Assembly: GCF_011386835.1 (NCBI RefSeq)
Contig: NC_088806.1
Span: 1,612,001-1,676,000, forward strand
DNA length: 64,000 bases
Source of the DNA: Chrysemys picta bellii
Taxonomy: Eukaryota
Reading direction: 5' to 3'
In this document: in pieces, positions 2,800-55,329 of the stretch
Layout: every line of letters starts with the position of its first letter
How positions within the stretch are numbered: the first letter of the stretch is position 1
The notes under the pieces: model-generated
Told to the model about the DNA's origin: nothing
Databases searched by the model: none
The model's input: the letters and a program-made list of their open reading frames with translations, nothing else
Program-made: the position numbers and the translations under genes

Positions 2800-4720
2800 G
2801 GGGATTTCTTAAAGGAAATGGATTTGCTGGCGTTCTTGGGTTGAAAACTTCAAAGCTCTTTGCAAACCTCACTAATTGGGAAGGTTTTAGTTCGGAAATC
2901 TCGCTTCCCCTGGATTCGCTACGTGGCTCTCACGCCCGTCACTGCGGAAAAAACCCCAAACGCATCCGTTGGAAATACCAGGATCGGCTGCGAATGTAAA
3001 GTCAATCCGCCCTGCACAGATGCACTTGAGGACAATTATTTTTTTGTCGTTGCAACCGTTGAGGGAATTTTCATTTGCAGATGAGGCCGAGCTGCAAAAT
3101 GATTTTGACTGAAGCCCTGAATGCAAAACCTAAGCAGCCACCGCATTACGAAACGTCGGGCAAAGTTCTTTTACTTTTATTCCAACAACAAAAAAATCAA
3201 ACTGGGTTCGCCAAGTTGGCACCCGTTCCAGCCGTGCTTCTAAATCCCCTTTATTCTTTTTTGGAGAACGTATTTGCAAACAGCCCAAGCGGCTCAATCA
3301 AGCTTTGCAATGCCTCTTAATTTGAGAAAGGTTTTTGGGTCAAAGACATTGTTGCAAGGCCGTAAATCACGTTGAGGAGGGGCGAGAAACTGAGCTCCCG
3401 ACCGCTGAGAATCATTTTGCAAATCTCCAGCCCCAGAAAAGAGGGGGGCCTTTTTGAGCACGACTGGCTCCCCAACGCTCTGGGTGTAGCCCCAGGTCCA
3501 GGCTTGCAGGTGGATTGTGTCGCGTTTAAAGGATCTGGGTGGATCTCCCTTGACAAGGGCAGAGGAGATCCCAGAAAATGAACTCCCAGTGTATTTCAAA
3601 TTTTGTCCATACCCACTTTTCCCATAAAGCCCATTTGACACAAACTGCAATAGAAAGGCTTTATTATAACCAAAAAACCATCCAATTCCTGCAGCTCCAA
3701 TCTTGCAAACGAGGGACCCGCAAAATCGAACTCCCGATTCTGCAAACAAGCGCTAAATCCCGCAAAGCGAACGACCGGCCCAGCCCCGAAACCTTCCGAG
3801 AGGGGATTTAAAAACTCCCTTCCCGGCGAGCTCAGCTGGCGAAAGCCGGGAGCGAGGAAGCGGCTCGGTGGGATCCCGACGAAGGGCAAGTGGATTTAAG
3901 GCCCCAGAGCCGGAGCTATAAATTATGTGGTTTCAAACGAAACGTTTTAAAGCTTGTGCAAAAAAACCCAACCATGTGCAATTCAGAAGCACAGCGTGAA
4001 CCCCAAATTCTCCTCGCGAAAGGTGTCAAACCTAAGACCGGTGTGGGGGGGCAGCGGGGGCCCACCCACAACGCCCCATCTGCAGGGTGCATTTTGGATA
4101 TGCGAGAGGGCAAAATATTCCCCCCAATGCTGGGGCAGGGAGAACAAAAGACAGTGTGCAGATGGGGGGAGCCTTTGGGGCGTACCCCAAAAACAGGCAG
4201 GCGGGGGGCATGAAGGCACCAGAGGGTTGATGGGGTCAAAGGGGTGACTCCAATGCAGAGGGGGGTGAACCCTGCAAATAAGGAATTAACCCCCTGAAAA
4301 GTCTCCATCCCAAGGGGTGGGAAGCTGGGGAGATGCCCCCCCCCAAAAGAGGAGTAAAGAATTGGCTTCGGTGCAGAGGGATCCCCAAAACTGGGAGTGA
4401 CCTTGAAACCTCAAGCCCATGGTCAGGTTAAACTGTGTCCCCCCAGCAGATCCAAAAGACATCCGGAGCACAAGGCACCAGCCCCCCCCAAAACGTGAGT
4501 CTGTCTTTGGCTTGTTCTCCACACACACACACCCCCGAGAGCTGCACCCCAAAAACAAAGGCACTTAAAGGGGTTCACGGTCCATCGGGAGGAAACCGAC
4601 GCGCGTCGTCTGCGGAGGTATCAGGCAGCAGGCGTTCCAATGCGACCAGCTCTGGGGTGGAGCGTTGGTCCCGAGCCAGGGGAGCCCCGAAGTCACCAGG
4701 CTGCACGGACTGCAAAGGGG
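2800..4720 (-). other. Probable IRS3 3' UTR with poly(A) signals
   Basis: Non-repetitive, AT-richer sequence downstream of the putative stop. Minus-strand AATAAA at 3660-3665, 3250-3255 and 3176-3181. Confidence 0.4.
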
Positions 4721-7700
4721 TCAGCACTCTGGAAGGGAGAGTCGAGAAAGGATCGATCCTGTATTAATGCCCCTGGTTGCAGCCACTTCTGGGGTGGGGC
4801 GGCTGGTTACATGGGGACCCCTCGCCTGGCACTGAGATGTGGCCACCTCTGGGGCGAGGCGGCCGGTTACCCAGGGACCCCTCGCCCGGTGCTGAGATGC
4901 AGCCACCTCTGGGGCGGGGCGGCCAGTTACCCAGGGACCCCTCGCCCGGTGCTGAGATGCGCCCACCTCTGGGGCAGCTGGTTAGCCAGGGACCCCTCGC
5001 CAGGCAGGAAGAAAGGAACAAAACAGCTGGAAAAGAAAAGGGGAAATAATAAACCTTTCCAGCCAGTTTCTCTCCGTTTTCTTTCCCCCGTTCAGAGTGA
5101 AGGAAGCAGGCCTAGAACCGCGGGCAATGTTGGATGGGGGGGGGGGGCAGGGGGAGCGTTTCGAGGGAATCCCACAGAAAAATAGAGGTTTCTAAGGGGG
5201 AACATCTCCACGTACAGTAAGAAGAGTCCGTTTCTAGTGCAAAGCCCCAACAGTGGTGTGAGTACGTATCAAATTATTCGGGGAACGATTCACATGCCCA
5301 CTGGCGAGGGGCAGCGACACGCCAACACCCCCCAAGGAGACGGTTTCTAAGGGGTGACCCGCACAAAAAAAGAGGCAGTTTCTAGAATGGATATTGCTCA
5401 GGCAACAAAGCCTGCTTCTAACCTTCCCCCACCGTTCATAGTTAAAATAAACACCTGCATTTTGAAGGGGAAAATCTTTCCCCCGTCCCCAGAAAGGCAG
5501 TTTCTAAAAGGGAAAATCCCTGGCCTCCAAAAAAATAGTTTTTAAGGGGGAGAACTGCAGCAGTTTCTAAAGGGGACCCCCGGCCAATTAAAAAAAAAAA
5601 ACGGTTTCTAATAGGGGACCCCCCCACAGCTGTCTCCACAGGGGAGAAACCCTTAGCCAAAGCAAGAAAACGCGGTTTCTAAAGGGGACCGTACACCCCG
5701 GGAAGGCAGTTTCAAGCAAGCGCCAGGAGGTTCTGCCTTCGCCGACCGCACAGAAACAGCTGAGTTGGCCCTGGAAGATGGGGGACAAACCCCAACCCCA
5801 AGTCTTTTTGGTAAAGAAACAAGGCAGCTGCAGGCCCCCTAAGGGCAGCTTAAAGCCATGGGGCTTTTGAAACCGCCGTGAACTCATCTCCACTGTGTTT
5901 ACAAAGCCTTTGTTTCTTCTTCGAGTGCTTGCTCATATCCATTCCATTAGGTGTGTGCGCGCCGCGTGCACGATCGTCGGAAGATTTTTACCCTAGCAAC
6001 ACCGGCGGGTCGGCTGTGGAGCCCCCTAGAGTGGCGCCTTCATGGCGCTGAATATATACCCCAGCCGACCCGGCGCCCCCTCAGTTCCTTCTTACCGCCC
6101 CTGACGGTCGTTGGAACTGTGGAGCGCTGCTTAGCTGTTCTCCACTTTCCCTAGCTTTATTGTTGTATCATAGTTGTAGTTATAGTTATAGTCTTAGAGT
6201 TTGTTGTAAGTTAGTTAAGTAGTTGTAAAGTTGTTCTAAATAGTCCAGGGGGTTAAGGGGGTCGTCTCCCCCCTTTCTCCCCCGGCCGCGGGGCCGGGCT
6301 CATGCCCAACGCTCCCGGCTTCAAGCTGTGCGCCTCCTGCGCTAAACCTATGCCCACGAGCGACCCGCACGAATCTTGTCTGAAGTGCCTGGGAGAGTCA
6401 CACCAGACAGACAAGTGTAAAATCTGTAAGGCCTTTCGTCCGAGAACGAAGAAGGAGCGGGACTTTCGGCTCAGGCAACTTCTGATGGAGGCGGCTCTTA
6501 GCCCGGACGCTCCTTCCACGAGCAAGGCCCCGGCACCTAGCACCTCGGTGCGCAGTGCCCCGGCGGCACCGGCTGCGACGACCACGCGAGTGGCGTCAGA
6601 CAAGCCTCCCCGGCACCGGACCTCGTCGGCACCGCAGACACAGCAAGTGCCTCGGCGCCGGTCCTTATCCCCAGGGCATAAAAAAGCCCATAAGACGGGG
6701 ACATCAGTGCCGAAGACGCCAGCTCCCCCAGTGTCGGGGGTAGAGCCGCGTCCACCGGTGGAGCAACGGAAACAGTTGCCTCCGGCACCGTCGACTCCGG
6801 CGCCGAGGCCGTTGAGTCCGGTGCAAATAGCGTCTCCCCCCAGGCCGGCGGTGATACAGTGCCTCCCGTCGACTCCAGAGACCTTCGCGGCGGCGAGAGA
6901 CTTAATAGCTCTCACGGAGCCGGCACCGCCTCAGCCACCGGCACCGACTGCACCGTTGACTCGCCCGGTCCAGTCGAGGGGGAAACCTGCTTTGATGCGC
7001 CCACCATCACAGGGGCTGGAACCTCGGCACCGGTCCAGGTCCCGAAGCAGGTCCCCACGCCGCTCGCAGTCCCGGCGCCGAATATCGTCTCGGCACCGGT
7101 CGTACTCGCGGCCAAGATCTACTTCGCGGCACCGCTCTACGTCTCGGCACCGCTATGATCGTCGGCACCGATCAACGTCGAGACGTAGTTCTCGGCACCG
7201 CTACGGTCGGCGCTCGACGTCGAGGGGTCGCTCCCGGCACCGGGCATACTCCAGGTCCTCGTCGAGGTCCAGATCCGACTCCCGGCACCGACGAGGTCAT
7301 CGGCACCGGTCGCGGTCCCGGCACCGATCGCCGGCACCGCGCGGAGATAGATCATCTCCGGACCGGCACCGTGCGGCACCGCAGCCCACCGGGATGGTTT
7401 CATCTCTCTCGGCACCGCCATGGCCGTCTAGATCGGTGTCTCGCTCCTCGGAGGACTTGTCGAGATCGGCATACCCCCCTCAAGGGCGCGCCGATGAACA
7501 AAATTTCGGCCACTGGCAGGAGATGGCAGAGGACCAATCTCATGGACCATCTCACTGGTCGTTTTGGACCCCGTGGGCATACCACCAAGAACAAGGGGCT
7601 CCAATACCATCGACCTCTCGCTCGGGTCACTCGGTTAGAAGGGCCCCAGAATCCACCATCTCTCGGCCTCCGCCAGGAGGCATGGAGGCTTCGGTGTCCA

Positions 7701-10700
7701 CGCCACCCGACACCAGGGACCCAAGTGCAGGTGATGCCCCGGCCCAAGAGCAAGGGGATCAGGACCCCCCCTTGGATCCGGTACCACCGGAGGCATCCTC
7801 TTCCTCCTCTCCGGACGAGGCAGTGGCGGGCACTTCATGTACGGGTCCCCCTCCGATAGATCTTCGGGCTCACCAGGATCTCCTGCGTAGGATGGCCCGT
7901 AATATGGACCTGCAGGCGGAGGAGATAGTGGAGGTGCACGACCCGATCGTGAACATCCTTGGAGCAGATGCCCCATCGAGGGTGGCGTTACCTCTGATCC
8001 GCACGATCCAATCGAATGCGGATACGATATGGCAAACTCCTGCCTCCATTCCACCCACAGCGAGAGGGGTGGAAAGAAAATACTTTGTCCCCTCTAAGGA
8101 CTATGGGTACTTGTACACCCACCCCCAACCGTGCTCACTGGTGGTGGAATCAGTGAATGCACGAGAGCGCCACGGCCAGCAGGCTGCAGCGCCTAAATCA
8201 AAAGAGGCTAAGCGGCTCGACCTGTTTGGCCGTAAGGTCTACTCAGCCGGAGGGCTACAACTGAGAGCGGCGAACCAACAGGCGTTACTGAGCCGCTACA
8301 ATTTCAACTCCTGGAACTCTATGGGGAAGTTTAAGGAGTTGATTCCCCAAGAGTCCAGGGAAGAGTTTGGAGCCATGGTAGAGGAGGGCAAGAAGGTGGC
8401 TCGGACCTCCTTGCAGGCCTCCTTGGACATTGCAGACTCAGCGGCGAGGACCCTGGCTTCGGGCATCGCTATGCGCAGGATCTCCTGGCTTCAGGTTTCG
8501 GGTTTGCCTCCGGAGCTGCAGCAAACCCTACAAGATCTGCCTTTTGAGGGGCATGGATTGTTCTCGGATAAGACGGATTCCCGCCTGCAGAGCCTCAAGG
8601 ACTCGAGAACAATCATGCGCTCCCTGGGGATGCATGTTGTGGGCCCCCAGCGCAGGCCATTTAGGCCGCAACCTCAGCGCTTCTACCCCCCCCCCGCCTC
8701 GTCAGAGACAAGACTCGGCCCGGAGGCGAGGGCGAGGTGGTAGAAGAAGGTGGACCGGCCCTCAACCCGGCCAGAACCAGGGGCCACCTCGACCACCTTC
8801 AGGCCCCAGGCAGAACTTTTGAAGGTGCGGTCGAGGACGGCGCCCCAGTCATCCCCCAGGATCCAGCCCCCTCCTTTCGGGATCGCCTCTCCCACTTCCA
8901 CCGTGCTTGGTCCCTTATAACTTCGGACCGTTGGGTCCTCCGCACGGTGGAGAGGGGATACGCTATCCAGTTTTCTTCTATCCCCCCCTCCTCCCCCCCT
9001 TCCCCGTCCCTCTTCAGGGACCCTTCTCACGAGCAACTTCTTATACAGGAAGTTTCTACGCTCCTCGCTATGGGGGCCATAGAGGAGGTTCCAGTGGAAT
9101 TAAGGGGCAGGGGATTCTACTCCCGTTATTTCCTCATCCCCAAGTCCAAAGGAGGTCTGCGACCCATCTTGGACTTGCGCGGACTCAACAAATTCGTAGT
9201 AAAGTTGAAGTTCCGCATGGTCTCTCTGGGGGCCATTATCCCTTCCCTCGATCCTGGAGACTGGTTCGCCGCCCTCGACATGAAAGACGCATACTTTCAC
9301 ATTGCTATTTACACGCCTCACAGACGCTTCCTGCGATTCGTGGTAAACAGGGTGCACTACCAATTTGCAGTCCTTCCCTTCGGCCTATCCTCGGCCCCAC
9401 GGGTGTTCACGAAATGTATGGCTGTCGTGGCAGCGTACCTTCGTCGGCAAGGGATACAGGTGTTCCCGTACCTAGACGACTGGCTGGTACGCGGTCGCAC
9501 CAAAGAACAAGTTCGCGATCACGTCCACATAATAGTGCGCACATTCAACAAGTTGGGTATCCTACTCAACAAGGACAAATCCACTCTAGAACCTACCCAG
9601 AGAATAGAATTCATCGGTGCGGTTCTAGACTCCAGACGCGCACAAGCCATCCTGCCAGACAATCGCTTTTGCACCATCACGAGCCTCATCCAAGGACTCA
9701 AGGCCTTCCCAACTACCACGGTGAGGTCATGCCTTACCCTGCTGGGTCACATGGCTTCCTGCACGTACGTAACCAGGCATGCCAGACTTCGGCTTCGCCC
9801 ACTCCAGACCTGGGTGTCATCAATATACCGCCCACATCGGGACAGCCTGAATATGGTGGTCACAATCCCGAACTCGGTCCTGACCTCCCTCACATGGTGG
9901 CTAGATCACAATGTGGTTTGCGAGGGGATGCCGTTTCACGCCCCACAACCCTCTCTGCACCTGGTCACAGACGCTTCATCTCTGGGTTGGGGCGCCCATC
10001 TCAACGAGCACCATACCCAGGGCCTGTGGACTGCACCTCAGCTAGCCCTACACATCAATGTTCGGGAACTGATGGCGGTGCGCCTGGCATGCCAGGCATT
10101 TCTCAATCTCCTACGTGGCCGCTGTGTGTTAGTTCTCACCGACAACACCACGGCCATGTTTTACATCAACAAGCAAGGAGGAGCACGTTCGTCAATTCTA
10201 TGCCAAGAGGCCATTCGCCTGTGGGACTTCTGCATCGCCCACTCAATCCATCTCACGGCATCGTTCCTCCCTGGAGTCCAGAACACTTTAGCGGACCGAC
10301 TCAGCAGGTCCTTTCAAACGCACGAGTGGTCTATCCGTCCGGACATCATACATTCCGTCTTCCAGAAGTGGGGGTTTCCCCAGATAGACCTGTTTGCATC
10401 TCGAGACAACAGGAAGTGCCACGTGTTCTGCTCCCTGCAAGGTCGAGCCCCAGGCTCCCTCTCGGATGCGTTTCTCCTTACCTGGAAAGACCACCTGTTT
10501 TATGCCTTCCCTCCGTTTCCTCTGGTCCACAAGGTACTGCTCAAATTGCGCAGAGACCAGGCACAGGTGATTCTGATCGCTCCAGCGTGGCCGAGACAAC
10601 ATTGGTACACCACGCTGCTGGAACTCTCGGTTCAGACACCGATCCCGCTTCCGTTGTATCCGGATCTCATCACGCAGAACCACGGCCGGCTGCGTCACCC

Positions 10701-13700
10701 CGACCTGCAATCACTCCACCTCACGGCGTGGCTGCTCCATGGTTCACCCAGGCAGAGCAACAGTGTTCACACTCTGTCCAACAGATTCTGCTGAGCAGTA
10801 GGAAGCCTTCAACACGGACCACATACTTGGCCAAGTGGAAGCGGTTCTCCTGTTGGTGCGAGCAACGAGCCACGTCCCCATTGCACGCACCTATTCCTCT
10901 TATTTTGGAATATCTCCTCTCCCTAAAACAGCAGGGGTTGGCGATATCTTCAATTAGAGTTCACCTGGCCGCTATATCGGCCTTCCATCCAGGGGAACTC
11001 GCGTCCTCGGTATTCTCTAACCCGATGGTCGTTAGATTCCTCAAGGGCTTAGACCGGATGTACCCACAACAACGTCAGCCCGTTCCGACGTGGGACCTCA
11101 ACCTGGTTCTCTCCAAGCTCACAGGTCCTCCATTCGAGCCACTGGCCACCTGTTCACTTCTGTACCTATCCTGGAAGACAGCCTTCCTCGTAGCCATCAC
11201 CTCAGCAAGGCGCGTTTCTGAACTCAGGGCGCTTACATCCGAGCCCCCTTACACAGTTTTCCATAAGGATAAAGTGCAGCTTCGTCCACATCCTGCCTTT
11301 CTCCCTAAGGTGGTTTCTCCATTTCATATCAACCAGGATATATTTCTCCCGGTCTTTCACCCTAAACCACATGCTTCTCGCCAGGATCAACGTTTGCATT
11401 CTCTGGACGTACGCAGGGCCCTGGCCTTCTATATTGACCGCACAAGGCCCTTTAGAAAGACGACGCAACTCTTCGTTGCAGTGGCCGACCGAATGAAAGG
11501 CTCACCGGTCTCATCACAACGCCTATCCTCCTGGATCACGTCTTGCATCCGGACTTGCTACGACCTGGCAGGTGTCTCAGCACCCCACCTCACCGCTCAC
11601 TCCACGAGGGCACAAGCTTCCTCGGCGGCTTTCCTGGCGCAAGTTCCGATCCAGGACATTTGTAGAGCTGCGGTTTGGTCGTCAGTCCACACGTTTACAG
11701 AACACTATGCACTAGTGCAGCAGTCCAGGGACGATGCTGCCTTTGGATCAGCGGTTTTGCACACAGCAATGTCTCACTCCGACCCCACCACCTAAGTTGG
11801 GCTTGGGAGTCACCTAATGGAATGGATATGAGCAAGCACTCGAAGAAGAAAAGACGGTTACTCACCGTTGTAACTGTTGTTCTTCGAGATGTGTTGCTCA
11901 TATCCATTCCAAACCCGCCCTCCGTCCCCACTGTCGGAGTAGCCGGCAAGAAGGAACTGAGGGGGCGCCGGGTCGGCTGGGGTATATATTCAGCGCCATG
12001 AAGGCGCCACTCTAGGGGGCTCCACAGCCGACCCGCCGGTGTTGCTAGGGTAAAAATCTTCCGACGATCGTGCACGCGGCGCGCACACACCTAATGGAAT
12101 GGATATGAGCAACACATCTCGAAGAACAACAGTTACAACGGTGAGTAACCGTCTTTTTTGTAGAGTCGCCCCACACCCTTGGGTCGTTGAGAAGCCACCA
12201 TCCGCAGTCCCAGCCCCACTCTGTGTTTACGTAGGGTAGCCCTCAACCTCCCCCCGCCAGCTCTTGCCAGACTTTCGAGCGCTGTTTACAAGCAGGGGTA
12301 TTTTTGTAGGGTAGCTTACAAAACAAACACCTTGCGGATGTTAGTAAACAAAGGGGAAGGTTTCTGGCTACCCTGCAAAAAGAAGCTCTTTGGAAAACCA
12401 TGACCACAGCCCCCCGCCCCGAACCTGCGTCCCCCTGACCCCGTGACCCCCAGATCCGCCCCGTACCTGGCCCGTCCCTTCCGCCCCGTCGTCCCTGCAG
12501 CTCCTGGGAGCGGTGGAAGTCGATGCTGGCGTAGGCCTGGGGGCTGGGGCCACCGGCCGCCCGGGGGCTCCCATCCGGGCCGCCTCCTCCCCGGGCCAGG
12601 TCCAGGGCAACGTAGTTGAGTCCCGGCTCCTCCCAGGCGGGGATGCCCCGCTCCCTGCAGCGCCGCCTGCCGGGCTCCGCCCTCGCCGGCTGGCCCGGGC
12701 CGGGCCGGTATTCGATGCTGACGTACTCCCCGGGGCTCAGGGACACCGGCTCCTCCAAGCTCTCACTGCTGGTGGAGGAGGAGCAGGAGGAGAGGCGCCC
12801 GGGCACGGCCAGCTGGGCCCCGTGCTTGTAGGTGCGCGGCAGGGAGCGGAAGGGGCAGGGGGCCTCCCCGGGGGCGCCGGGCGGGGGGCTGCGGCGCAGG
12901 GGGGTGCTGCTGGCCGAGCGCCACAGCGGGGACATGTTCACGTACTCGGGCGCCCAGCTCCCGCTGGGGGACATGAGCATGTACCCGGCGGCTTCGCCCC
13001 GGGGCGGAGAGACGCCGCTGGGGCTCATGGGCACGTAATCCGGCTGCCCCGCGCCCGGCAGGGCTGCCCCGGGCAGCATGGCCATGTAGCCGGACTCTGG
13101 GCACCACCCTGGCTTCCTCCGCCCGGCGCCTGTGCCCAGCGCCAAGGGGGGCAGCGACGGCCGCTTGCAGCTGGGCGCCCGCCCCTCCGGGGAGCCTGCC
13201 GGCTCTGGGCTGCCCGTCGGGCGCCCCTCTCCGGGGCTGGAGGATCCGCCCTCGTCCGACGACGCCAGGGCGTAGTCCCCGTCGGGCAGGCGGCGCCCGG
13301 AGCCCGGCAGCTGGGCAGGGGGCAGGCGCCGGGCCGGCACCGAGATGGGGGCGGAGGCCTGGCCGCGGCCTCGCACCCGGCACTCCTCACTCAGCCGCTT
13401 CATGGCCTCCAGGATGGTTTCGTGGATGTGCCGGGCCACCACCAGGTCCTCCACCTGCATCCACAGCTCGCCGGGGCCCGTGGCGGCCGAGCGCCCCACC
13501 TCCAGGAAGAAGTAGTTCTCCGAATGGCCGCAACGCCGGACACTCAGCAGCTGCAGCAGTAGGCAGGGGGCCGGGGCGCCGAGCTGCACCAGCTCCACCG
13601 TGCTCTCCGCCAGGCACAGCCGGTGCACGCCCACCAGGTTCCTGGCCTGCCCCAGCCCCTTGGGGCGCAGGCTCACCTGCCACACCTCCCGGAAGGGCCA

Positions 13701-15747
13701 CGCCGCCCCGCTCCCCGGCTGCGACAGGCCTGCGGGAAGGGGAGGAGAGGGTTAAACCAGGTGGGGAATGCGGCTGGCTCTGCGGAGGGGGCAGAGATGG
13801 CACTCGGTGGGAGACAGGTTCCCCGGAGACCCCTCGCCCGGCGCTGAGACACCCCCACCTCTGGGGCGGGGCGGCCGGTTCCCAGGGACCCCTCGCCCGG
13901 CGCTGAGATGCAGCCACCTCTGGGGCGGGGCAGCCGGTTCCCAGGGACCCCTCGCCCGGCGCTGAGATGCAGCCACCTCTGGGGCGGGGCGGCCGGTTCC
14001 CCAGGGACCTCTTGCCCGGTGCTGAGATGCGCCCACCTCTGGGGCGGGGCGGCCGGTTCCCCAGGGACCTCTTGCCCGGTGCTGAGATGCGCCCACCTCT
14101 GGGGCGGGGCAGCCAGTCACACAGGGCCCCGCGTTGAGCTGTGGCAGTGGCTGGATACGAGCACAGGGCAGGTGACCGGGAAGCAGGGTGGAGGGGGGGG
14201 GAACAGGTGGGAGAACAGGACCAAGGAATAAACAGACCCAAAGATCCCAGTGCCGTGGCAACCACCCACGTCACCCTGGTGACTGACTGTTTCCATGGGG
14301 ACCCAGGGGAGGGGGGAGACAGCTATGGTGGGAAATGGCCGGGGAGAGGTAATTTCGATAGCTGGAAACAGGATTGAATATTTAATATATTTAATATTTC
14401 CTGGAATATTCCCCTGCTGGGCGCAGGGAGAGAACCCAGGAGTCCTGGCTCCCAGCGCCCCCTGCTCTAACTACCAGCCCCCGCTCCCCTCCCATAGCTG
14501 GGGAGAGAACCCAGGAGTCCTGGCTCCCAGCCCCCCCTGCTCTAACCCACCAGCCCCCACTCCCCTCCCAGAGCCAGGGAGAGAACCCAGGAGTCCGGGC
14601 CAGGTCCCTGTAGTATTGTTGGTCTCTATTGCATATGGCACTAGCTGTTCCAGGGCAAAGTTTGCTGCCTGCCCTGGGTGAATTGTCCGGGCGCTCGGCC
14701 ACGCTGGGCCCTGGGACAAAACGGGACAGATTGGCCCAATTCCTCGGCTGGCGCCTGGAACCGTATCAGGGCTTTTATCCACCCCCATCCTGCCTCTTCT
14801 GGGGCTGGACTTTGCCCATATGAGATTTCGGAAATAGAACCCAGAGCCCACCCCGCTCCCGGAATCGGGGAGAGAACCCAGGAGTCCTGGCTCCCAGACC
14901 CCCCTGCTCTAACCCACCAGCCCCCACTCCCCTCCCAGAGCCAGGGAGAGAACCCAGGCGTCCTGGCTCCCAGCCCCCCTGCTCTCTCCCTGGCTCTGGG
15001 AGGGGAGTGGGGGCTGGTGGGTCAGAGCAGGGGGGGCAGGGAGCCAGGACTCCTGGGTTCTCTCCCCGGCTCTGGGAGGGGAGTGGGGGCTGGTGGTTAG
15101 AGCAGGGGGTGCTGGGAGCCAGGACTCCTGGGTTCTCTCCCCGGCTCTGGGAGGGGAGTGGGGGCTGGTGGGTTAGAGCAGGGGGGGCTGGGAGCCAGGA
15201 CTCCTGGGTTCTCTCCCTGGCTCTGGGAGGGGAGTGGGGGCTGGTGGTTAGAGCAGGGGGTGCTGGGAGTCAGGACTCCTGGGTTCTCTCCCCAGCTGTG
15301 GGCTGCCCAATTGTATTTTTCAGTCACTCCCCCGTACCGCTGCCCACGCACCAGCCTCCCTTTGCCAGGTCGGTGGCCCCCTCGCCTGCCCTCACCCTTG
15401 GCGCGCAGCTCTGTCATGGCGCAGTACCAGGCCTCCTGCTGCTCTGGGCTCTCGGCCGCCACCCCGAAGGTGCCATCCCGGCCGTACAGCACGATGAGGT
15501 GCCGGTGCCGGGCGTCCGCCCGCTTGTTGATGTTCAGGGCACTGGCCAGGGGGAAGCTGCGTTTGGGGCGGGCGCCGCCAGCCCTGAATTTCTTCTCGCT
15601 CTCGTAGTACTCCAGGCGGGCCGGTCCCCGCTCGCTGGGCGCCCGCAGCACGAAAAACCGGCGCCGCTGGGACTTCTGCTTCCGCAGGTGCCCGCACAGA
15701 CGGACGTCGGCCACGGGCGGGTCGCCCTCACCGGCCGCCTCCTCCAT
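4721..15747 (-). CDS. IRS3: Insulin receptor substrate 3-like adaptor (PH + PTB + YxxM tail), ~540 aa
   Basis: Exon 15747-15396 encodes the PH domain (LCGHLRKQKSQRRRFFVLR...RLEYYESEKKF...NINKRADARHRHLIVLY) and ends in phase 1 at G|GTGAGG. Exon 13729-12467 (acceptor TTCCCGCAG|GC) encodes the PTB domain (FREVWQVSLRPKGLGQ...RRCGHSENYFFLEVGRSAATGPGELWMQV), then YMAM, YVPM, YMLM, YVNM, NYVAL and AYASIDF, with a candidate donor G|GTACGG. A putative last exon 4728-4721 (acceptor CTCTCCCTTCCAG|AG TGC TGA) adds 'EC*' and is less certain. The compact size, the intron between PH and PTB, and the position next to AGFG2/NYAP1 favour IRS3 over IRS1/2/4. Confidence 0.8.
4770..5000. repeat. 60-bp GC-rich dispersed minisatellite family A, ~4 units
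   Basis: Unit ~CCAGAGGTGGGCGCATCTCAGCGCCGGGCGAGGGGTCCCTGGGTAACCGGCCGCCCCGCC (here in reverse orientation). Confidence 0.85.
5913..6090 (+). repeat. DIRS left inverted terminal repeat
   Basis: Reverse complement of 11943-12100, with one visible mismatch at the inner edge (cttaccg/cttgccg). The ORF track gives identical peptides MCARRVHD...SSFLP from both ITRs. Confidence 0.95.
6302..8822 (+). CDS. DIRS gag (ORF1): N-terminal Cys/His finger, RS-rich middle, LAP2alpha-like C-terminal domain; apparent +1 indel in a C10 run at 8686-8695
   Basis: CASCAKPM..DPHESCLKCLGESH..DKCKIC finger, RSRSRS tract, then HQDLLRRMA..., WQTPASIPPTARGVERKY, LDLFGRKVYS and LPFEGHGLFS. As assembled the ORF stops at 8743. 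Removing one C extends it through a basic tail to ...RQNF-TGA at 8822. Confidence 0.9.
8737..10794 (+). CDS. DIRS pol: reverse transcriptase, RNase H and DNA adenine-methylase-like domain
   Basis: RT: GFYSRYFLIPK..GGLRPILDLR, ALDMKDAYFH, LPFGLSSAPRVFTK, PYLDDWL. RNase H: TDAS..GWGA, HINVREL.AV, TDNTT, N.LAD.LSR. MT-like: IDLFAS, YAFPPF. No internal stops. Confidence 0.95.
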   Translation: MVEEGGPALNPARTRGHLDHLQAPGRTFEGAVEDGAPVIPQDPAPSFRDRLSHFHRAWSLITSDRWVLRTVERGYAIQFSSIPPSSPPSPSLFRDPSHEQLLIQEVSTLLAMGAIEEVPVELRGRGFYSRYFLIPKSKGGLRPILDLRGLNKFVVKLKFRMVSLGAIIPSLDPGDWFAALDMKDAYFHIAIYTPHRRFLRFVVNRVHYQFAVLPFGLSSAPRVFTKCMAVVAAYLRRQGIQVFPYLDDWLVRGRTKEQVRDHVHIIVRTFNKLGILLNKDKSTLEPTQRIEFIGAVLDSRRAQAILPDNRFCTITSLIQGLKAFPTTTVRSCLTLLGHMASCTYVTRHARLRLRPLQTWVSSIYRPHRDSLNMVVTIPNSVLTSLTWWLDHNVVCEGMPFHAPQPSLHLVTDASSLGWGAHLNEHHTQGLWTAPQLALHINVRELMAVRLACQAFLNLLRGRCVLVLTDNTTAMFYINKQGGARSSILCQEAIRLWDFCIAHSIHLTASFLPGVQNTLADRLSRSFQTHEWSIRPDIIHSVFQKWGFPQIDLFASRDNRKCHVFCSLQGRAPGSLSDAFLLTWKDHLFYAFPPFPLVHKVLLKLRRDQAQVILIAPAWPRQHWYTTLLELSVQTPIPLPLYPDLITQNHGRLRHPDLQSLHLTAWLLHGSPRQSNSVHTLSNRFC
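8823..11795 (+). CDS. DIRS tyrosine recombinase ORF (YR domain from ~10740; the frame is open through the whole pol overlap)
   Basis: STRTTYLAKWKRF, ISSIRVHLAAIS, catalytic R in ITSARRVSELRAL, HSTR (H-x-x-R) and TFTEHY (Tyr). I checked codon by codon that the frame is open from 8823 to the ORF-track start at 8907. Confidence 0.93.
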   Translation, partial: RCGRGRRPSHPPGSSPLLSGSPLPLPPCLVPYNFGPLGPPHGGEGIRYPVFFYPPLLPPFPVPLQGPFSRATSYTGSFYAPRYGGHRGGSSGIKGQGILLPLFPHPQVQRRSATHLGLARTQQIRSKVEVPHGLSGGHYPFPRSWRLVRRPRHERRILSHCYLHASQTLPAIRGKQGALPICSPSLRPILGPTGVHEMYGCRGSVPSSARDTGVPVPRRLAGTRSHQRTSSRSRPHNSAHIQQVGYPTQQGQIHSRTYPENRIHRCGSRLQTRTSHPARQSLLHHHEPHPRTQGLPNYHGEVMPYPAGSHGFLHVRNQACQTSASPTPDLGVINIPPTSGQPEYGGHNPELGPDLPHMVARSQCGLRGDAVSRPTTLSAPGHRRFISGLGRPSQRAPYPGPVDCTSASPTHQCSGTDGGAPGMPGISQSPTWPLCVSSHRQHHGHVLHQQARRSTFVNSMPRGHSPVGLLHRPLNPSHGIVPPWSPEHFSGPTQQVLSNARVVYPSGHHTFRLPEVGVSPDRPVCISRQQEVPRVLLPARSSPRLPLGCVSPYLERPPVLCLPSVSSGPQGTAQIAQRPGTGDSDRSSVAETTLVHHAAGTLGSDTDPASVVSGSHHAEPRPAASPRPAITPPHGVAAPWFTQAEQQCSHSVQQILLSSRKPSTRTTYLAKWKRFSCWCEQRATSPLHAPIPLILEYLLSLKQQGLAISSIRVHLAAISAFHPGELASSVFSNPMVVRFLKGLDRMYPQQRQPVPTWDLNLVLSKLTGPPFEPLATCSLLYLSWKTAFLVAITSARRVSELRALTSEPPYTVFHKDKVQLRPHPAFLPKVVSPFHINQDIFLPVFHPKPHASRQDQRLHSLDVRRALAFYIDRTRPFRKTTQLFVAVADRMKGSPVSSQRLSSWITSCIRTCYDLAGVSAPHLTAHSTRAQASSAAFLAQVPIQDICRAAVWSSVHTFTEHYALVQQSRDDAAFGSAVLHTAMSHSDPTT
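11812..11911 (+). repeat. DIRS internal complementary region (ICR)
   Basis: CACCTAATGG...CTCGAAGAAGAAA is the reverse complement of the element 5' end. It is joined to AGACGGTTACTCACC...ATCCATTCCA, the reverse complement of the 3' end, giving the circle-junction sequence. Confidence 0.93.
11943..12156 (-). repeat. DIRS right inverted terminal repeat plus 3' extension
   Basis: Reverse complement of the left ITR, followed by a tail complementary to the ICR, ending at GTCTTT. Confidence 0.93.
13790..14115. repeat. 60-bp family A array in IRS3 intron
   Basis: ~5 units of GAGATGCGCCCACCTCTGGGGCGGGGC... Confidence 0.85.
14420..15300. repeat. ~75-bp family B minisatellite, copies in both orientations
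   Basis: Unit GGAGAGAACCCAGGAGTCCTGGCTCCCAGCCCCCCTGCTCTAACCCACCAGCCCCCACTCCCCTCCCAGAGCC; orientation flips at ~14985. Confidence 0.9.
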
Positions 15748-17414
15748 GGTGCGCCAACTCAGGGGAACAGGAGAGTTAAGGCATGCCCCCCCCGCCCTGT
15801 TTGCAACGCCACCACATCCGGCCTGCTTCGGGGGGCAGAGCTTTGGGGGTGCCTAGGGTTTGTCGCTACACCTGTCCTCTTTGGGGGGGGGCAATTCACA
15901 CACACCCCTCTTTCGCAACTACCTCTTTCGGGGTACCGAGCTTCGGGGGTGCCCAGCGTTTCACGCCACCTCTGCGCCCGGATCATCTCCTTCCCAGGAG
16001 TTCATTCCTCTCCAGTTTTGCAACCTGCTGTCTTTCAAGGGCGCCTCCCCCAAGTTTTTGCAACAGCACCAGGACTCCCTTCCGGGGGGCAGAGGTTTAG
16101 TGCCTTCGCCCCCTGGATTGGGCCTGCCGGAGACCCAGGAGCATCGAAAGGAGGCGCCGTTGCAAACTCGCTTCTCTTGCGTCCCGCATGTGTCCAAAGC
16201 CTGTGCCGAGCGCCGGGCAGCCTGGCCCCGCTTCGCCGTGATTTCACGGCCGGTCAGTTTGCAGCCAAAGTCGCCTCGCCATGCCGGAGCCAATTTTGCA
16301 CAAGCCACGGCAGCGTGCAAACAAGAGTCCCTTTGCAATCTCGAACGGCTGCAAAAAACCAATCTTCGCAGAGGTGCAGCCGCGCAGGCCCTCGCTGGCC
16401 AGCTGCAGCCTTGTTTGCACTAGGACACGAATTTCTTCTTTTGCAATCGGCTCCGGATTTGATTTTAATAGAAGTCACATGAAGAGAAGCGAAATAAATC
16501 AGCCGAGTTTTTTTTTTTTCCATGCGGTTTGCTGGCGCAAAACTGGAAGCCAGCGAAGGGGAGGGGGGAGAACAGGACTTGGAAAAATAGGAGAAAGGAG
16601 CAACGTTGCTTTTTGCAGCCGAAAGATCGCTCCGCTCTCGGCCTGGTTTCGCCCGCAAAAGTTTGGATCGGCGCCTCGCCCCCGAACACGGAGGCCGCCT
16701 GGGATCTCCCGGTTGCAAACAGCAGCGCCAGGCGACCGCACGATTCTTAACACTTTTGCACAGAAGCGGGACGGGCGTCTCGCTTTCCACGCAAACGAGG
16801 CACGGAAAAAACTCGAGCGAGGGGCTTTCTCGGCACAAAGCCACGGGCCCGGTGGAGAAACCCCCACGAAAAGCTACTGTGCGGGGAGGCGGCTGGCGCT
16901 GGCCCCTGAGCCAGAGATTGATGTAGCAAGAAGGGGGGGGACAAGTTAACGCGGAGGGGGGGTTCTTGGAGGACTTGCAGAAAAGGCAAAGGGGGGGGAC
17001 CCTTCACACAAGTGGATCCCCCCCGTGCAGAAGCAGGTGGAGCGGGCACAGAACCCGGGGGGGCCCCTCGGTGCGATCACCTCCCAGGTCAGGAGTGTGG
17101 GGGGGGGGGCTGCGATAACCCCCCCACGGGCGAGCCAGGCCGAGCTGCGAGCCCCGAGCGCGGCACAGTGCAAAGGGAGCAAATGCGCCCGGGGCTGCGG
17201 GTCTCTTCTCCGCCCGGCCCCGGCTCTCCCGGGCAGCCCGGCCCCCGCCCCCGCCGCTCCGGGCAAACACCCGCTGCCATGAGGCGGCTGCTGGACCTGA
17301 TTGATGGCTCTGCAGGCGCGGGGGAGGGGGGGATTTAAAGGGCCAGCAAAGGAGGGGGAGCTGCTGCCCACCCCCTCCCCCAACCCCTCGGGTCCTGCGT
17401 CTCCCTCACGAAGG

Positions 17415-18310
17415 GGGTAACCGGCCGCCCCGCCCCAGAGGTGGGCGCGTCTCAGCGCCGGGCGAGGGGTCTCCATGTAACCGGCTGCCCCACCCCAGAG
17501 GTGGGCGCATCTCAGCGCCGGGCGAGGGGTCCCTGGGGAACCGGCCTCCCCACCCCAGAGGTGGGCGCATCTCAGCGCCGGGCGAGGGGTCCCTGGGGAA
17601 CCGGCCGCCCTGCCCCAGAGGTGGCTGCATCTCAGCGCCGGGCGAGGGGTCCTCGCGTAACCAGCCGCCCCGCCCCAGAGGTGGGCGTATCTCAGCGCCG
17701 GGCGAGGGGTCCTTGGGTAACCGGCCGCCCTGCCCCAGAGGTGGGCGTATCTCAGCGCCGGGCGAGGGGTCCCTGTGTAACCGGCCGCCCCGCCCCAGAG
17801 GTGGGCGCATCTCAGCACCGGGCGAGGGGTCCCTGGGTAACCGGCCGCCCTGCCCCAGAGGTGGGCGCGTCTCAGCGCCGGGCGAGGGGTCCCTGTGTAA
17901 CCGGCCGCCCCGCCCCAGAGGTGGGCGCATCTCAGCACCGGGCGAGGGGTCCCCGGGGAACCGGCCGCCCCGCCCCAGAGGTGGGCGCATCTCAGCGCCG
18001 GGCGAGGGGTCCCCGGGTAACCGGCCGCCCCACCCCAGAGGTGGGCGCATCTCAGCGCCGGGCGAGGGGTCCCTGGGGAACCGGCCGCCCCGCCCCAGAG
18101 GTGGGCGCGTCTCAGCGCCGGGCGAGGGGTCCCCGTGTAACCAGCCGCCCTGCCCCAGAGGTGGGCACATCTCAGCGCCAGGCGAGGGGTCCCTGGGTAA
18201 CTGGCCGCCCCATCCCAGAGGTGGGCGCATCTCAGCACCGGGCGAGGGGTCCCTGTGTAACCGGCCGCCCCACCCCAGAGGTGGGCGCATCTCAGTGCCG
18301 GGCGAGGGGT
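17415..18310. repeat. 60-bp family A tandem array (~15 units)
   Basis: Units stack in register with the 60-nt lines of the listing; they yield spurious ORFs of 220-570 aa. Confidence 0.95.
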
Positions 18311-18679
18311 CCCCCTCCCGTTCCTGGGACCCAGCCATGCGGTTCTGGTGTCTGGCGCCTCGGCCAATGGGGAGGTAGTGTTGGGCTCTGACGGAGGAAT
18401 GTAGCCATCCCTCATCCAATCAGCTGCGGCCCTGGGGCTCCCTCCCCCCTTTAACCCCTTCCTCCCTGCTGCCCACTCTCTCTCACGCCCCCCGCACAAC
18501 CTCCTCCCAGGGCCCAGGTGCCTGGGGTGTGTGTGTGTCTCCCCACTGCACGGGGTCCCCTGGTGTCTATGGGGTGTTGGGGGGGCACTGAGTGTGGTCA
18601 CCGTGTGCGGGGGGGGGCGGGTGACTGAACAGCCATGAGTACACAATGGAGACATAAACCCAGCTCCCGCCTGCCGCTC

Positions 18680-21057: not shown

Positions 21058-22557
21058 ATGTCTGCAGCCAGGCCGCCCCTCGCCACCCTCCTCCTAGTGG
21101 CCCTGAATGTGGGGCTCTACCTTCGCCCCCTGGGGTCCCCCGAAAACACCTGCCTCAGCGTGCAGGGGGTCTGGGCTCTGGGCGAGTGGCAGCGCCTCCT
21201 GCTAGCTCCCTTCCACCACCTGGGCTGGGGCCACCTGGGGCTGAACATGGGGGCATTGCTGTGGCTGGGGGCAGGGCTGGAGGGGAGGGTGGGCAGCGCC
21301 CGAGCGGGCTGGATCCTGGGGGGCATGACGCTGCTGGGGGGGCTGGTCCATCTCGGGCTGAACGCGGGGCTGGCGGCCGTCCTGCGAGATCCCTGGCGCC
21401 GGGAACACTGCGCCGTGGGCTTCTCAGGTAGGGAGCCTAGGCCCAGCTGGGTTGGGACCCAGGAGTCCTGGCTCCCAGCCCCCCCCTCCCCCGCTCTAAC
21501 CCACCAGCCCCCACTCCCAGAGCCGGGGAGAGAACCCAGGCGTCCTGCTTTACCTATCCGATCCGTCCCCCCCCCTTTTGCAGGGGTCATCTTCTCTCTG
21601 GAAGCCATGGAGGGTCTCCTAGCGCCTGTCACCATAGTAACCCTGGGCAGCGTCACCATAACCACCAAATGGCTCTGCCTGGCAGAGTGCTTCACCGTGA
21701 CCCTCCTGTACCCCAGGTGGGCGCTAGGGGGCGCCATGGGGCAAAGAGCAGGATGGAGGGTTCAGCAGCGGGTGGGGCAGAGGGCGCTGTGGGGCAGGGC
21801 AGGGGGTCGGGGAGGAGGTGCTGTGGTGCAGGGTGCAGGGCAGGGGGCTCTGTGGGGCAGGGCAGGGGGCTGTGAGGCAGGGGTCACGGCGGGGCAGGAG
21901 GCAGGGCAGAGGGCGCTGTGGGGCAGGGCAGGGGGTGGGGGAGGCGGTGCTGTGGGGCAGGGTGCAGGGCACGGGGCTCTGTGGGGCAGGGCAGGGGGCT
22001 GTGAGGCAGGGGTTGCTGTGGGACAGGGGGTGGGGCAGAGGGCGCTGTGGGGCAGGAGGCGGGGCAGGGGTCACGGCGGGGCAGGAGGCAGGGCAGAGGG
22101 CGCTGTGGGGCAGGGCAGGGGGTGGGGGAGGAGGTGCTGTGGGGCAAGGCAGGGGGAGCTGTGGGCAGGGTAGGGGTTGCTGTGGGACAGGGGGTGGGGC
22201 AGAGGGCGCTGTAGGGGCTGCAGGCAGGGCAGAGGGTGCTGTGGGGCAGGGTGCGGGGTAGGGGTTGCTGTGGGGCAGGGGGTGGGGTAGAGGGCGCTGT
22301 AGGGGCTGCAGGCAGGGCAGAGGGTGCTGTGGGGCAGGGTGCGGGGCAGGGGTTGCTGTGGGTCAGGGGGTGGGGTAGAGGACGCTGTGGGGCAAGGCAG
22401 GGGATTTGTGGGGCAGGGGCACTGCACTGCCCCACTGTAACCCCCACCTCTTCTCCGCAGCAGCTCCTTGACAGGCCACCTGTCTGGAATGCTGGTGGGC
22501 GTGGCTCTGGCGGCCACGCCCCTCGGCTTGGCCACGCCCCTCTCCATTCACTTATGA
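21058..22557 (+). CDS. Rhomboid intramembrane serine protease, RHBDD1/RHBDL4-like paralog, ~198-199 aa
   Basis: Exon 21058-21427 encodes PP.ATL.LVALNV, CLSV, WQRLLLAPFHH, HLGLNM, LEGRVGS and CAVGFS, ending G|GTAGGG. Exon 21584-21716 (TTTTGCAG|GG; 133 nt) encodes GVIFSLEAM...WLCLAE...LYP and ends AG|GTGGGC. Exon 22461/22464-22557 (NAGNAG acceptor) encodes SSLTGHLSGMLVGVAL...IHL-TGA. All phases are compatible. GFSG Ser and GHxxG His are present. Confidence 0.88.
21770..22420. repeat. G-rich minisatellite in rhomboid intron 2
   Basis: Repeated GGGCAGAGGGCGCTGTGGGGCAGG. Confidence 0.8.
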
Positions 22558-32200: not shown

Positions 32201-32506
32201 GTAGCCCCGCCCCCACTCACAGCGCGCCCGAGCAGCCCGCGCGCGCAGCCCCGCCCCCACTCACAGCGCGCCCGAAGCCCCGCCCCCTGCCCGTAGCCCC
32301 GCCCCCACTCACAGCGCGCCGGAGCAGCCCGTGCACACGAAGCTGCCCAGCGTGATGTCCACGTAGGTGACGCCGCGCTGGCCGCACTCGAAGCAGAGGC
32401 GATTGCCGGGCCCGGAGCCCACCAGGTCCCTGACGCGGCGGGACCAGACCTCGGACTCCGCGTCTCGCGGGGCGCCGGGCTTCCTGCCTCCGGACCCGGC
32501 CGCCAT
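26203..32506 (-). CDS. AGFG2: ArfGAP with FG repeats 2, 11 coding exons, 386 aa
   Basis: Exons 32506-32313, 31293-31200, 30467-30352, 30062-29933, 29437-29293, 28464-28351, 27546-27459, 27295-27231, 27137-27054, 26788-26718 and 26262-26203; all GT-AG, total 1161 nt in frame. Zinc finger CFEC-x16-CTGC-x4-R, RGLNPPHRVKSISMTTFT, DPQKVKEFLQEKYEKKRWY, KKASTDLLADIGGDPF, four NPF motifs and C-terminus TNPFL*. Confidence 0.95.
28485..29200. repeat. 69-bp tandem array (~10 units) in AGFG2 intron 5
   Basis: Unit GGTCAGCCAGCTCCCAGCCTGCACTACCCAGTATCACCACGTGGGGGCCTCGCTAGCTCAGCGCTCTAT. Confidence 0.95.
29520..29930 (+). repeat. Family B array in AGFG2 intron 4
   Basis: ~6 units in the GAGAACCCAGGAGTCC orientation. 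Confidence 0.9.
30505..31130 (-). repeat. Family B array in AGFG2 intron 2 (opposite orientation)
   Basis: ~8 units in the GGACTCCTGGGTTCTCTC orientation. Confidence 0.9.
31780..32325 (-). repeat. 44-48-bp GC-rich array built from the AGFG2 exon 1 end plus splice donor
   Basis: Minus-strand unit GGGCTGCTCGGGCGCGCT|GTGAGTGGGGGCGGGGC copies the real exon 1/intron 1 junction. Confidence 0.85.
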
Positions 32507-44088: not shown

Positions 44089-50898
<6,810 letters not shown>

Positions 50899-53620: not shown

Positions 53621-53984
53621 TGAACTGTCGGACTCCTGCTACCCCTGGCGGGGGGTGGTGCATTTGGGGTGATGTGGAGGGCGGAAGGGTTGGTGTGGGT
53701 TGGCAGAACGTGACAGGGAGCGGAGGGGGGAGACCCACGGCACCTGGGGTGAGCGTGGCTCCTGCGCGGCCCGGGGACGAGTTATCCGGGGGGGCAGGAG
53801 TGGGGGGCGGGGGGCATGTCTGGCCAGTGCCGATGCGGGTCCCCCGGCGCTGCTCCGGGCTGAGCTCAGGGGGGTCTCCGGTCCATGCTCGGCGTCGGGT
53901 GCTGCCCCGGCAGATCAGGGATCCTCTACGGGCCTGGGGGAGAGAGGGGGGTCACAGGGGCCTGGGGTCCCATCCCCTGCCCCA

Positions 53985-55250
53985 TGGCCCCCAACAATTG
54001 CCCCGTGCCCCTCAGTGACCCCCATCCCCTGCCCCACAGCCCCCAACAATCACCCCGTGCCCCTCGGTGACCCCCAGCGCCCCATCCCCTGACCCACAGC
54101 CCCCAACAATTGCCCCGTGTCCCTCAGTTACCCCCAGTGCCCCATCACCTGCCCCACAGCCCCCAACAATCACCCCCTGCACCCCAACACCTGTCCCACA
54201 GCCCCCAACAATCGCCCCATGCCCCTCGGTGACCCCCAGCACCTGCCCCATGGCGCCCAACAATCGCCCCGTGCCCCTCGGTGACCCCCAGTGCCCCATC
54301 TCCTGCCCCACAGCCCCCAACAATCAACCCCAGCGCCCCATCCCCTGCCCCACAGCCCCCAACAATCGCCCCGTACCCCTCAGTGACCCCCAGTGCCCCA
54401 TCACCTGCCCCACAGCCCCCAACAATTGCCCCGTGCCTCTCGGTGACCCCCATCCTCTGCCCCACAGCCCACAACAATCACCCCGTGCCCCTCGGTGACC
54501 CCCAGCGCCCCATCCCCTGCCCCACAGCCCCCAACAATTGCCCCGTGTCCCTCAGTTACCCCCAGTGCCCTATCACCTGCCCCACAACAATCCCCCCTGC
54601 ACCCCAGCACCTGCCCCACAGCCCCCCAACAATCGCCCCGTGCCCCTCGGTGACCCCCATCCTCTGCCTCACAGCCGCCAACAATCACCCCGTGCCCCTC
54701 GGTGACCCCCAGTGCCCCATCCCCTGCTCCACAGCCCCCAACAATCGCCCCGTGCCCCTCGGTGACCCCCATCCCCTGCCCCACAGCCCCCAACAATCAC
54801 CCTGTACCCCTCGGTGACCCCCAGCATCCCATCCCCTGCCCCACAGCCCCCAACAATCACCCCCTACCCATCGGTGACCCCCAGCGCCCCATCCCCTGCC
54901 CCACAGCCCCCAACAATCGCCCTGTGTCCCTCAGTGACCCCCAGCACTCCATCACGTGCCCCACAACCCCCAACAATCGCCCCGTGCCCCTCAGTGCCCC
55001 AAAGTGCCCCAGCACCTGCCCAACAGCCCCCAACAATCGCCCTGTGTCCCTCAGTGACCCCCATCCCCTGCCCCACAGCCCCGAACAATCACCCCGTGCC
55101 CCTCAGTGACCCCCAGCGCCCCATCCCCTTCCCCACAGCCCCCAACAATTGCCCCGTGCCTCTCGGTGACCCCCATCCTCTGCCCCACAGCCCACAACAA
55201 TCACCCCGTGCCCCTCGGTGACCCCCAGCGTCCCATCCCCTGCCCCACAA
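53985..55250. repeat. C-rich minisatellite (CCCCACAGCCCCCAACAATCGCCCCGTGCCCCTCGGTGACCCC)
   Basis: Repeated units visible throughout the interval. Confidence 0.9.
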
Positions 55251-55329
55251 CCCTGCCCCCATCCCCGTGATCATGGCTGGAGCCCCTTGCTGGAGCCCAG
55301 TGCGCACCCCCAGCCCCACAGTTTCCCCT

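Follow-up and report, generated by a model that had tools for sequence, protein, structure and literature searches.

The DNA analysed here is a stretch of 64,000 nucleotides (nt) from the painted turtle Chrysemys picta bellii (assembly GCF_011386835.1, contig NC_088806.1, positions 1,612,001 to 1,676,000), hereafter termed the window and numbered from its first letter, in which a run of N occupies positions 63444-63943. On the minus strand of the window, from position 15747 to position 4721, lies a gene of three coding exons, the coding sequence of which comprises 1623 nt and specifies a protein of 540 amino acid (aa) residues, with further genes situated to its right (Table 1). Based on phylogeny, gene structure, gene order and substitution pattern, we conclude with a probability of approximately 0.93 that this gene is the painted turtle orthologue of insulin receptor substrate 3 (IRS3), as an initial annotation of the window had proposed, and that it is intact, protein-coding, organised in three coding exons and under purifying selection.

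Gene structure and encoded protein

Exon 1 ends in phase 1 as a consequence of its length, and its donor GT is located at 15395-15394; the acceptor AG and donor GT of exon 2 are located at 13731-13730 and 12466-12465, respectively, and the acceptor AG of exon 3 at 4730-4729. A check of the sequence revealed that all four splice dinucleotides are intact and that all introns are of the GT-AG type and in phase 1, the first junction reading AAG G/gt...ag/GC (slashes denoting exon boundaries). The initial annotation had described an uninterrupted PH exon and an exon encoding the PTB domain and tail, joined by phase-1 splicing to yield a protein of approximately 540 aa, and each of these elements was indeed found at the position assigned to it.

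Table 1. Features identified in the window, with positions numbered from its first letter.
Feature	Position	Strand	Remarks
Probable 5' untranslated region	15748-16940	-	unbroken with exon 1; related-turtle transcript aligns from 16940 to 15395 at 74-90% identity
Coding exon 1	15747-15396	-	ATG at 15747; 117 codons and 1 base, 352 nt
PH domain match	15699-15415	-	exon 1; PF00169
Intron 1	13730-15395	-	GT...AG, phase 1; interrupts a Gly codon
Coding exon 2	13729-12467	-	1263 nt, phase 1 at both ends; PTB domain and tyrosine-rich tail
IRS-type PTB domain match	13670-13392	-	exon 2; PF02174
YxxM cluster (YMAM, YVPM, YMLM, YVNM)	13088-12933	-	predicted docking sites for the SH2 domains of p85 of PI 3-kinase
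EYVSIEY motif	12708-12728	-	conserved in turtles, lizards, Xenopus and mammals
NYVAL within LNYVALDL	12617-12603	-	SHP2-type site
YASI within YASIDFH	12533-12522	-	SHP2-type site near the C-terminus, common to all IRS proteins
Intron 2	4729-12466	-	GT...AG, phase 1; enlarged by transposon insertion
Exon 3, coding part	4728-4721	-	8 bases, AGTGCTGA (AG TGC TGA): completes a Glu codon, then Cys and stop
3' untranslated region	3612-4720	-	related-turtle transcript aligns down to 3612; AATAAA at 3665-3660
DIRS-like retrotransposon, 6.2 kb	5916-12154	+	inside intron 2, antisense to IRS3; not part of the gene
Rhomboid-domain gene	21058-22557	+	Pfam Rhomboid, E 2e-11; between IRS3 and the AGFG2-type gene
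ArfGAP zinc-finger exon, AGFG2-type gene	32315-32470	-	PF01412, E 1e-9; upstream of IRS3, same strand
NYAP1-type gene exons	46889-49535	-	PF15439 NYAP_N, E 2e-48 and 7e-30
Open reading frame	61245-61847	+	no Pfam match

The encoded protein displays the features of the IRS family, namely an N-terminal PH domain, an IRS-type PTB domain directly following it, and a tail bearing multiple YxxM motifs and C-terminal SHP2-type sites. The PH domain was recognised by its Pfam profile (E 1e-6, above the gathering score) and by a match of exon 1 to the PH domain of the human IRS1 structure 1qqg (E 1e-34). The PTB domain was likewise recognised by its Pfam profile (E 2e-17, above the curated threshold), and exon 2 matches the structure of the human IRS1 PTB domain 1irs (E 7e-45) without a gap over 109 residues. 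The RRCGH(SE) and EVGRS(A) stretches of this domain are identical to those of IRS1 in the alignment, and their arginines are residues which we take to be IRS1 Arg212 and Arg227, holding the phosphotyrosine of the receptor.

The four YxxM motifs of the tail are predicted, by analogy, to represent docking sites for p85. Together with EYVSI, LNYxxLDL and YASIDF, the motifs YMAM, YVPM, YMLM and YVNM keep their places in the alignment of Xenopus, turtle and squamate proteins with mouse Irs3, and the initial annotation, which had listed the four YxxM motifs along with NYVAL and YASI, was accurate with regard to both their presence and their location. The sequence LNY(I/V)DLDL is otherwise invariant; emydids and a related turtle represented by sequencing run SRR27880532 read LNY(V/I)ALDL, in which Asp at position +2 is replaced by Ala.

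If the protein acts in the manner suggested by its domains, the PH domain would bring it to the membrane and the PTB domain would bind the activated insulin or IGF-1 receptor at its phosphorylated NPxY motif, whereupon the receptor would phosphorylate the tyrosines of the tail; the four YxxM sites would recruit the p85 subunit of PI 3-kinase, and NYVAL and YASI would recruit SHP2. Rodent Irs3 is enriched in adipocytes and dispensable alone, according to literature cited by Al-Salam & Irwin (BMC Evol Biol 2017; PMC5482937).

Assignment to the IRS3 lineage

A phylogenetic tree was constructed using IQ-TREE from 58 PH-to-PTB segments of natural proteins and was rooted on invertebrates. A large representative search was used for this tree because a word search with lizard Irs3 returned only Irs3-type proteins among its best 120 matches, with no IRS1, IRS2 or IRS4 among them. 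The anchors were mouse Irs3 (NP_034701), IRS1 of Trogon and Ambystoma, IRS2 of Equus, Hemicordylus and Ambystoma, IRS4 of Rhinatrema, proteins of lamprey, hagfish and invertebrates, and a cyprinid cluster with a 1051-aa zebrafish protein, the length of which agrees with that of Irs4b in PMC5482937. Anchor names were obtained from the representative search and from cluster look-ups, and mouse Irs3 through a search with a mammalian member.

Turtles, squamates and mammals, the latter including mouse Irs3, form an amniote clade with support of 100/99, the tetrapod Irs3 clade is supported at 100/96, and the grouping of the Irs3 clade with lungfish, coelacanth and ray-finned fish at 95/90, these fish proteins being termed Irs3 in PMC5482937. 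IRS1, IRS2, IRS4 and the cyclostome proteins constitute a separate clade (97/91). The amniote clade also contains a 662-aa protein of the garter snake (Thamnophis), which corresponds in length to the garter-snake Irs3 of Table 2 in PMC5482937. Phylogeny had been named by the initial annotation as a check on the identity of the gene, and its outcome, with the turtle protein beside mouse Irs3 and apart from IRS1, IRS2 and IRS4, supports the assignment to IRS3.

Trees built from the PH domain or the PTB domain only placed the exons of the window with their turtle orthologues (97-98% identical to the turtle rows), and in the PTB-only tree the long mammalian branch was pulled toward the outgroup. 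In a reverse search with a mammalian Irs3 query, turtles provided the best non-mammalian matches. The names carried by members of the Irs3 clade in the databases include IRS1-like, IRS1-B, IRS2-like and "uncharacterized".

The intron between the PH and PTB domains provides a further marker. Mouse Irs3 possesses a single intron of approximately 345 bases, which is in phase 1 and interrupts a Gly codon (ATG G/gt...ag/GT), in agreement with the description of rodent Irs3 in the initial annotation as a short protein (495 aa in mouse) with an intron at this place. Intron 1 of Emydura IRS3 (CAG G/gt...ag/GC) has the same phase and interrupts the same Gly codon, and in mouse, painted turtle and Emydura the intron lies approximately 15-20 residues ahead of the FxxVW start of the PTB domain. 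The exon 1 matches in gar and Xenopus stop at residues 117 and 109, respectively, these positions being match ends. The PH and PTB regions of IRS1, IRS2 and IRS4 are not known to be split by an intron.

Gene order was assessed in the window and at the corresponding loci of Emydura and mouse. Rightward of IRS3, the window contains the rhomboid gene, the AGFG2-type ArfGAP gene, the NYAP1-type gene and the open reading frame at 61245-61847, in that order, and the window aligns with the final ArfGap exons of Emydura at approximately 26.3-27.0 kb. The open reading frame presumably resembles the first coding exon of TSC22D4, which we take to be the neighbour of NYAP1 in mammals. In Emydura, the AGFG2-type ArfGAP gene, IRS3 and LRCH4 are consecutive, and the mouse locus has Sap25 and Lrch4 after Irs3; LRCH4 is positioned beyond the window, and its location is taken from these two species. 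Mammalian Irs3 is flanked by Lrch4 and Agfg2 with Nyap1 nearby, and the presence of a rhomboid gene near IRS3 fits the pairing of this locus with the IRS1 region, where Rhbdd1 and Nyap2 are found (PMC5482937). Three independent lines of sequence comparison, namely the intron, the gene order and the tail motifs, agree with the tree in pointing to IRS3.

Transcripts, selection and the terminal micro-exon

The exons were employed as separate queries, and their join was checked by locating both exon translations inside existing database proteins. The features of the gene are far beyond chance, and both translations are contained, letter for letter, within RefSeq and UniProt proteins of Chrysemys picta bellii; the 540-aa RefSeq protein XP_023958433.1 consists of exactly exon 1, G, exon 2 and EC. 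A word search with exon 2 additionally retrieved a Trachemys protein, 98% identical and named "insulin receptor substrate 1-like", and a 509-aa protein from a Logan assembly with the end ...DGPEC. For the latter, a 3.7-kb contig of run SRR27880532 contains an unbroken coding sequence; this contig matches the window in three separate segments (16940-15395, 13730-12467 and 4732-3612), reads GGGCCAG/AGTGCTGA across the second junction and ends shortly past AATAAA. Since this contig is free of introns, aligns in three blocks and terminates after the AATAAA signal, it is an assembled mRNA of a related turtle in which both junctions are visible. Two more contigs encode proteins that are 99% identical to the SRR27880532 protein, all three contigs ending in ...DGPEC. 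The SRR27880532 protein is 87% identical to that of the painted turtle, and its N-terminal half is about 90% identical to fragments from Terrapene, Gopherus and Chelonoidis. The three-exon model of the initial annotation, including its 8-base exon, is upheld by this contig and by the exact match to the RefSeq protein.

Both exon 1 and exon 2 have an open frame in the painted turtle, the side-necked turtle Emydura and the SRR27880532 turtle, and exon 2 is open in Trachemys, the locus of which begins with 9197 bases of N, so that its PH exon falls outside the comparison. The pairwise ratio of nonsynonymous to synonymous substitution rates (dN/dS) among turtles ranges from 0.26 to 0.46; for the painted turtle it amounts to 0.30 (codon bootstrap 0.20-0.44) against the SRR27880532 turtle, 0.37 (0.28-0.48) against Emydura and 0.31 against Trachemys for exon 2, and all bootstrap replicates are at or below 0.55. 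The initial annotation had put forward dN/dS across turtles as a check, and the upper 95% limits of the first two values are below 0.5. As measured by codon substitution, turtle IRS3 is demonstrably under purifying selection.

The 8-base exon is not confined to the painted turtle. The genes of Xenopus laevis and spotted gar end in CAG/AATGTTGA, the same 8-base coding exon, following introns of approximately 10 kb and 25 kb, respectively, and the corresponding sequence of Emydura is CAG/GGTGCTGA (at approximately 13583-13591 of its locus sequence). The occurrence of the same micro-exon in Emydura, Xenopus and gar indicates that it is an old and conserved feature of Irs3. The encoded C-terminus, ...YASIDFxxSxELR...(K/R)DGTEC, is shared by frogs, a salamander, caecilians, gar, bichir and salmon, is shorter in zebrafish, sharks and rays, and reads DGPEC, RPGC or GPDC in turtles; the C-termini of squamate and mammalian Irs3 differ from it, as do those of IRS1, IRS2 and IRS4 (IRS1 ending in ...REE/KEE). 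Judging from the gene structures compared, the arrangement of a PH exon, a PTB-plus-tail exon and an 8-base exon is the ancestral Irs3 structure of bony vertebrates, of which mammals, on the same comparison, keep the first intron and have lost the micro-exon ending. We tentatively suggest that the micro-exon and the ...(K/R)DGTEC-COOH end may have served Irs3 since early times as a functional element, such as a C-terminal site for docking or modification, that has persisted from sharks, gar and amphibians to turtles (in the form DGPEC) and was lost independently in squamates and mammals, although we consider this possibility rather doubtful. If it were true, turtle IRS3 would keep an interaction that is absent from rodent Irs3, the sole member studied at the bench, and those elasmobranch proteins that end in the same way would count as orthologues of Irs3.

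Shark and ray IRS proteins (Mobula, Heptranchias, Narcine and Rhinoraja; approximately 885-954 aa) are among the best matches to lizard Irs3. The C-termini of Heptranchias and Rhinoraja read ...YASIDFHKSEELRSHK..EDC and that of Narcine ...TDC, all of which are Irs3-like, and the Mobula model ends otherwise. In the 58-segment tree these proteins fall in a basal three-way split, and PMC5482937 reports no Irs3 in the single cartilaginous fish surveyed there. No mention of a terminal micro-exon was found in the available portion of Al-Salam & Irwin (PMC5482937), and its conservation is a small addition to what has been published on Irs3 evolution. This exon accounts for the fact that some automatic models continue beyond the donor of exon 2 or otherwise fail to reproduce the correct C-terminus.

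Several observations weigh against the conclusion that the gene is an intact IRS3 of three coding exons. In the 58-segment tree the long mammalian branch falls inside the turtles and not beside all sauropsids, and the single-domain trees resolve deep nodes poorly; the transcript evidence is that of a related turtle, 87% identical at protein level; and the databases predict other products, namely further four-exon isoforms with a repeat-derived exon in RefSeq and a 621-aa read-through form in Ensembl/UniProt (A0A8C3I181). The nesting of the mammalian branch is probably a long-branch or composition artefact, on account of which the branching order within amniotes is unreliable. It is extremely improbable that the gene arose as a short, lineage-specific paralogue of IRS1 (or of IRS2 or IRS4) or as a truncated copy of one of them: the separation of those proteins in the tree, the position of the turtle proteins with mouse Irs3 in a clade that also holds the garter-snake protein named Irs3 in PMC5482937, the PH/PTB intron common to turtle and mouse, and a gene order equal to that of the Irs3 locus all led to its rejection. 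The RefSeq and UniProt names (IRS1-like and IRS1) would favour such an origin, as would the strong matches of both its PH domain and its PTB domain to human IRS1 structures, but IRS1 was the sole family member among the solved structures found. A silent or decaying gene with a frame that is still intact, that is, a pseudogene of recent origin in which the 6.2-kb DIRS insertion may have caused disturbance, is very unlikely and was rejected on the basis of the intact frame and splice sites and the low dN/dS. Even though the insertion is recent, being absent from Trachemys, and has expanded intron 2 from approximately 1.5 kb to 7.7 kb, it is intronic and antisense, and gar and Xenopus splice the same micro-exon over introns of approximately 25 kb and 10 kb. 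Furthermore, all motifs and the polyadenylation signal are intact, the exon 2 ratio against Trachemys is 0.31, and (predicted) RefSeq models for Chrysemys picta bellii exist as several isoforms.

A remaining alternative accepts the gene as IRS3 and holds that its main product lacks the 8-base ending, being either the read-through form or a form with an extra, repeat-derived exon (560 aa), both of which are present in the databases for Chrysemys picta bellii. The frame is open for 74 codons beyond the exon 2 donor (12243-12466, minus strand), and A0A8C3I181 passes this donor to the stop at 12243, ending in ...QELAGGG. The 560-aa RefSeq X1 isoform incorporates an extra exon near 4945-5028, derived from a 60-bp tandem array in intron 2, and this exon (...AVLFLSSCLARGPWLTSCPR...) also occurs in the X1 isoforms that RefSeq lists for Trachemys and Malaclemys. 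However, the array in which it sits differs between species, all three related-turtle transcript contigs code for the ...DGPEC end, an E/G/D-C end is kept in Pelusios, Emydura and Pelodiscus and, in the form ...TEC, in amphibians (frogs, salamander, caecilians), in gar, bichir and salmon and in sharks, and gar and Xenopus have retained the micro-exon itself. A main product of this kind is consequently regarded as unlikely, and the read-through model as probably a mis-annotation, and the three-exon IRS3 of 540 aa is preferred.

The remaining sequence of the window is rich in repeats. The DIRS-like element contains three extended open frames, of 813, 685 and 962 aa, in which reverse transcriptase and RNase H are recognised along with weak Dam-like and tyrosine-recombinase matches; it carries inverted terminal repeats of 169 nt that are 99% alike, as well as short internal stretches complementary to its ends. 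As it is not present at the orthologous Trachemys site, its insertion is considered recent. One 60-bp tandem repeat family occurs on both strands at 4783-5005 (intron 2 of IRS3), approximately 13809-14130 (intron 1), 17415-18313, 48601-48810, 49978-50679 and 58707-59543. Very long open frames of up to 1042 aa, extremely rich in proline and serine, were observed at 51100-58400 (plus strand), the DNA beneath them being tandemly repeated and strongly C-skewed (GC skew down to -0.85), and a separate array of approximately 1.4 kb, at 44300-45730, has several open frames on each strand.

Comparison with known IRS proteins

Al-Salam & Irwin reported Irs3 in every reptile that they surveyed, two from Ensembl and five from NCBI, with the turtle Pelodiscus sinensis among them, and described it as lost in primates and birds and shortened in tetrapods (PMC5482937). 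With reptile Irs3 published and a painted turtle model in RefSeq, the finding is correct and was already known; what remains beyond the literature is the naming error in the databases and the point concerning the terminal micro-exon. The initial annotation had anticipated that automated pipelines might mislabel the gene, and RefSeq does call it 'insulin receptor substrate 1-like' and UniProt 'Insulin receptor substrate 1'. Under the IRS1-like name the gene is hidden from comparative studies of insulin signalling, such as those on turtle metabolism, anoxia tolerance and longevity, and on the present evidence the RefSeq/UniProt record could be renamed IRS3. That a chelonian keeps all four IRS genes is confirmed, the importance of which lies mainly in curation.

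The reptile Irs3 sequences of PMC5482937, namely those of the garter snake (662 aa), Pelodiscus sinensis (XM_006114651) and the anole (ENSACAG00000008078), represent the same gene as that of the window; the turtle sequence treated there is partial, and the painted turtle is outside the set. The Thamnophis 662-aa and Pelodiscus proteins belong to the clade of turtle IRS3 and are among its best matches. Squamate Irs3 is approximately 100-190 residues longer than the turtle protein and has lost the ...EC ending.

Human IRS3P, which the initial annotation had cited as a pseudogene at 7q22.1, occupies the orthologous locus, for which the IRS1 region at 2q36 is the syntenic partner (PMC3769281). It carries a stop codon and deletions (PMC5482937), in contrast to the intact turtle copy, the human side of this comparison being taken from the literature alone.

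IRS1, IRS2 and IRS4 share the domain order and the kinds of docking motif of the turtle protein, and the identity of its PTB domain to that of human IRS1 is high, but they are proteins of 1000-1400 aa, as opposed to 540 aa in the turtle, and constitute a separate clade. The short length of amniote Irs3 (approximately 500-700 aa) is seen in turtle (540 aa), mouse (495 aa) and garter snake (662 aa) alike.

The closest experimentally known counterpart is mouse Irs3 (NP_034701), the pp60/IRS-3 of rodent adipocytes, which has the same arrangement of PH domain, IRS-type PTB domain and short tail. The two genes share their clade, the phase-1 intron in a Gly codon and their neighbourhood, and the four YxxM motifs, EYxSI, LNYxDLDL and YASI align between their products. 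They differ in that the mammalian PH and PTB domains are far more diverged (on a branch of 0.75, with approximately 34% identity over exon 2), in that mouse Irs3 ends with YASIKF within exon 2, without the terminal micro-exon, and in that the turtle protein exceeds mouse Irs3 in length by 45 residues and contains the sequence DYALASSD, which is not found in mammals.

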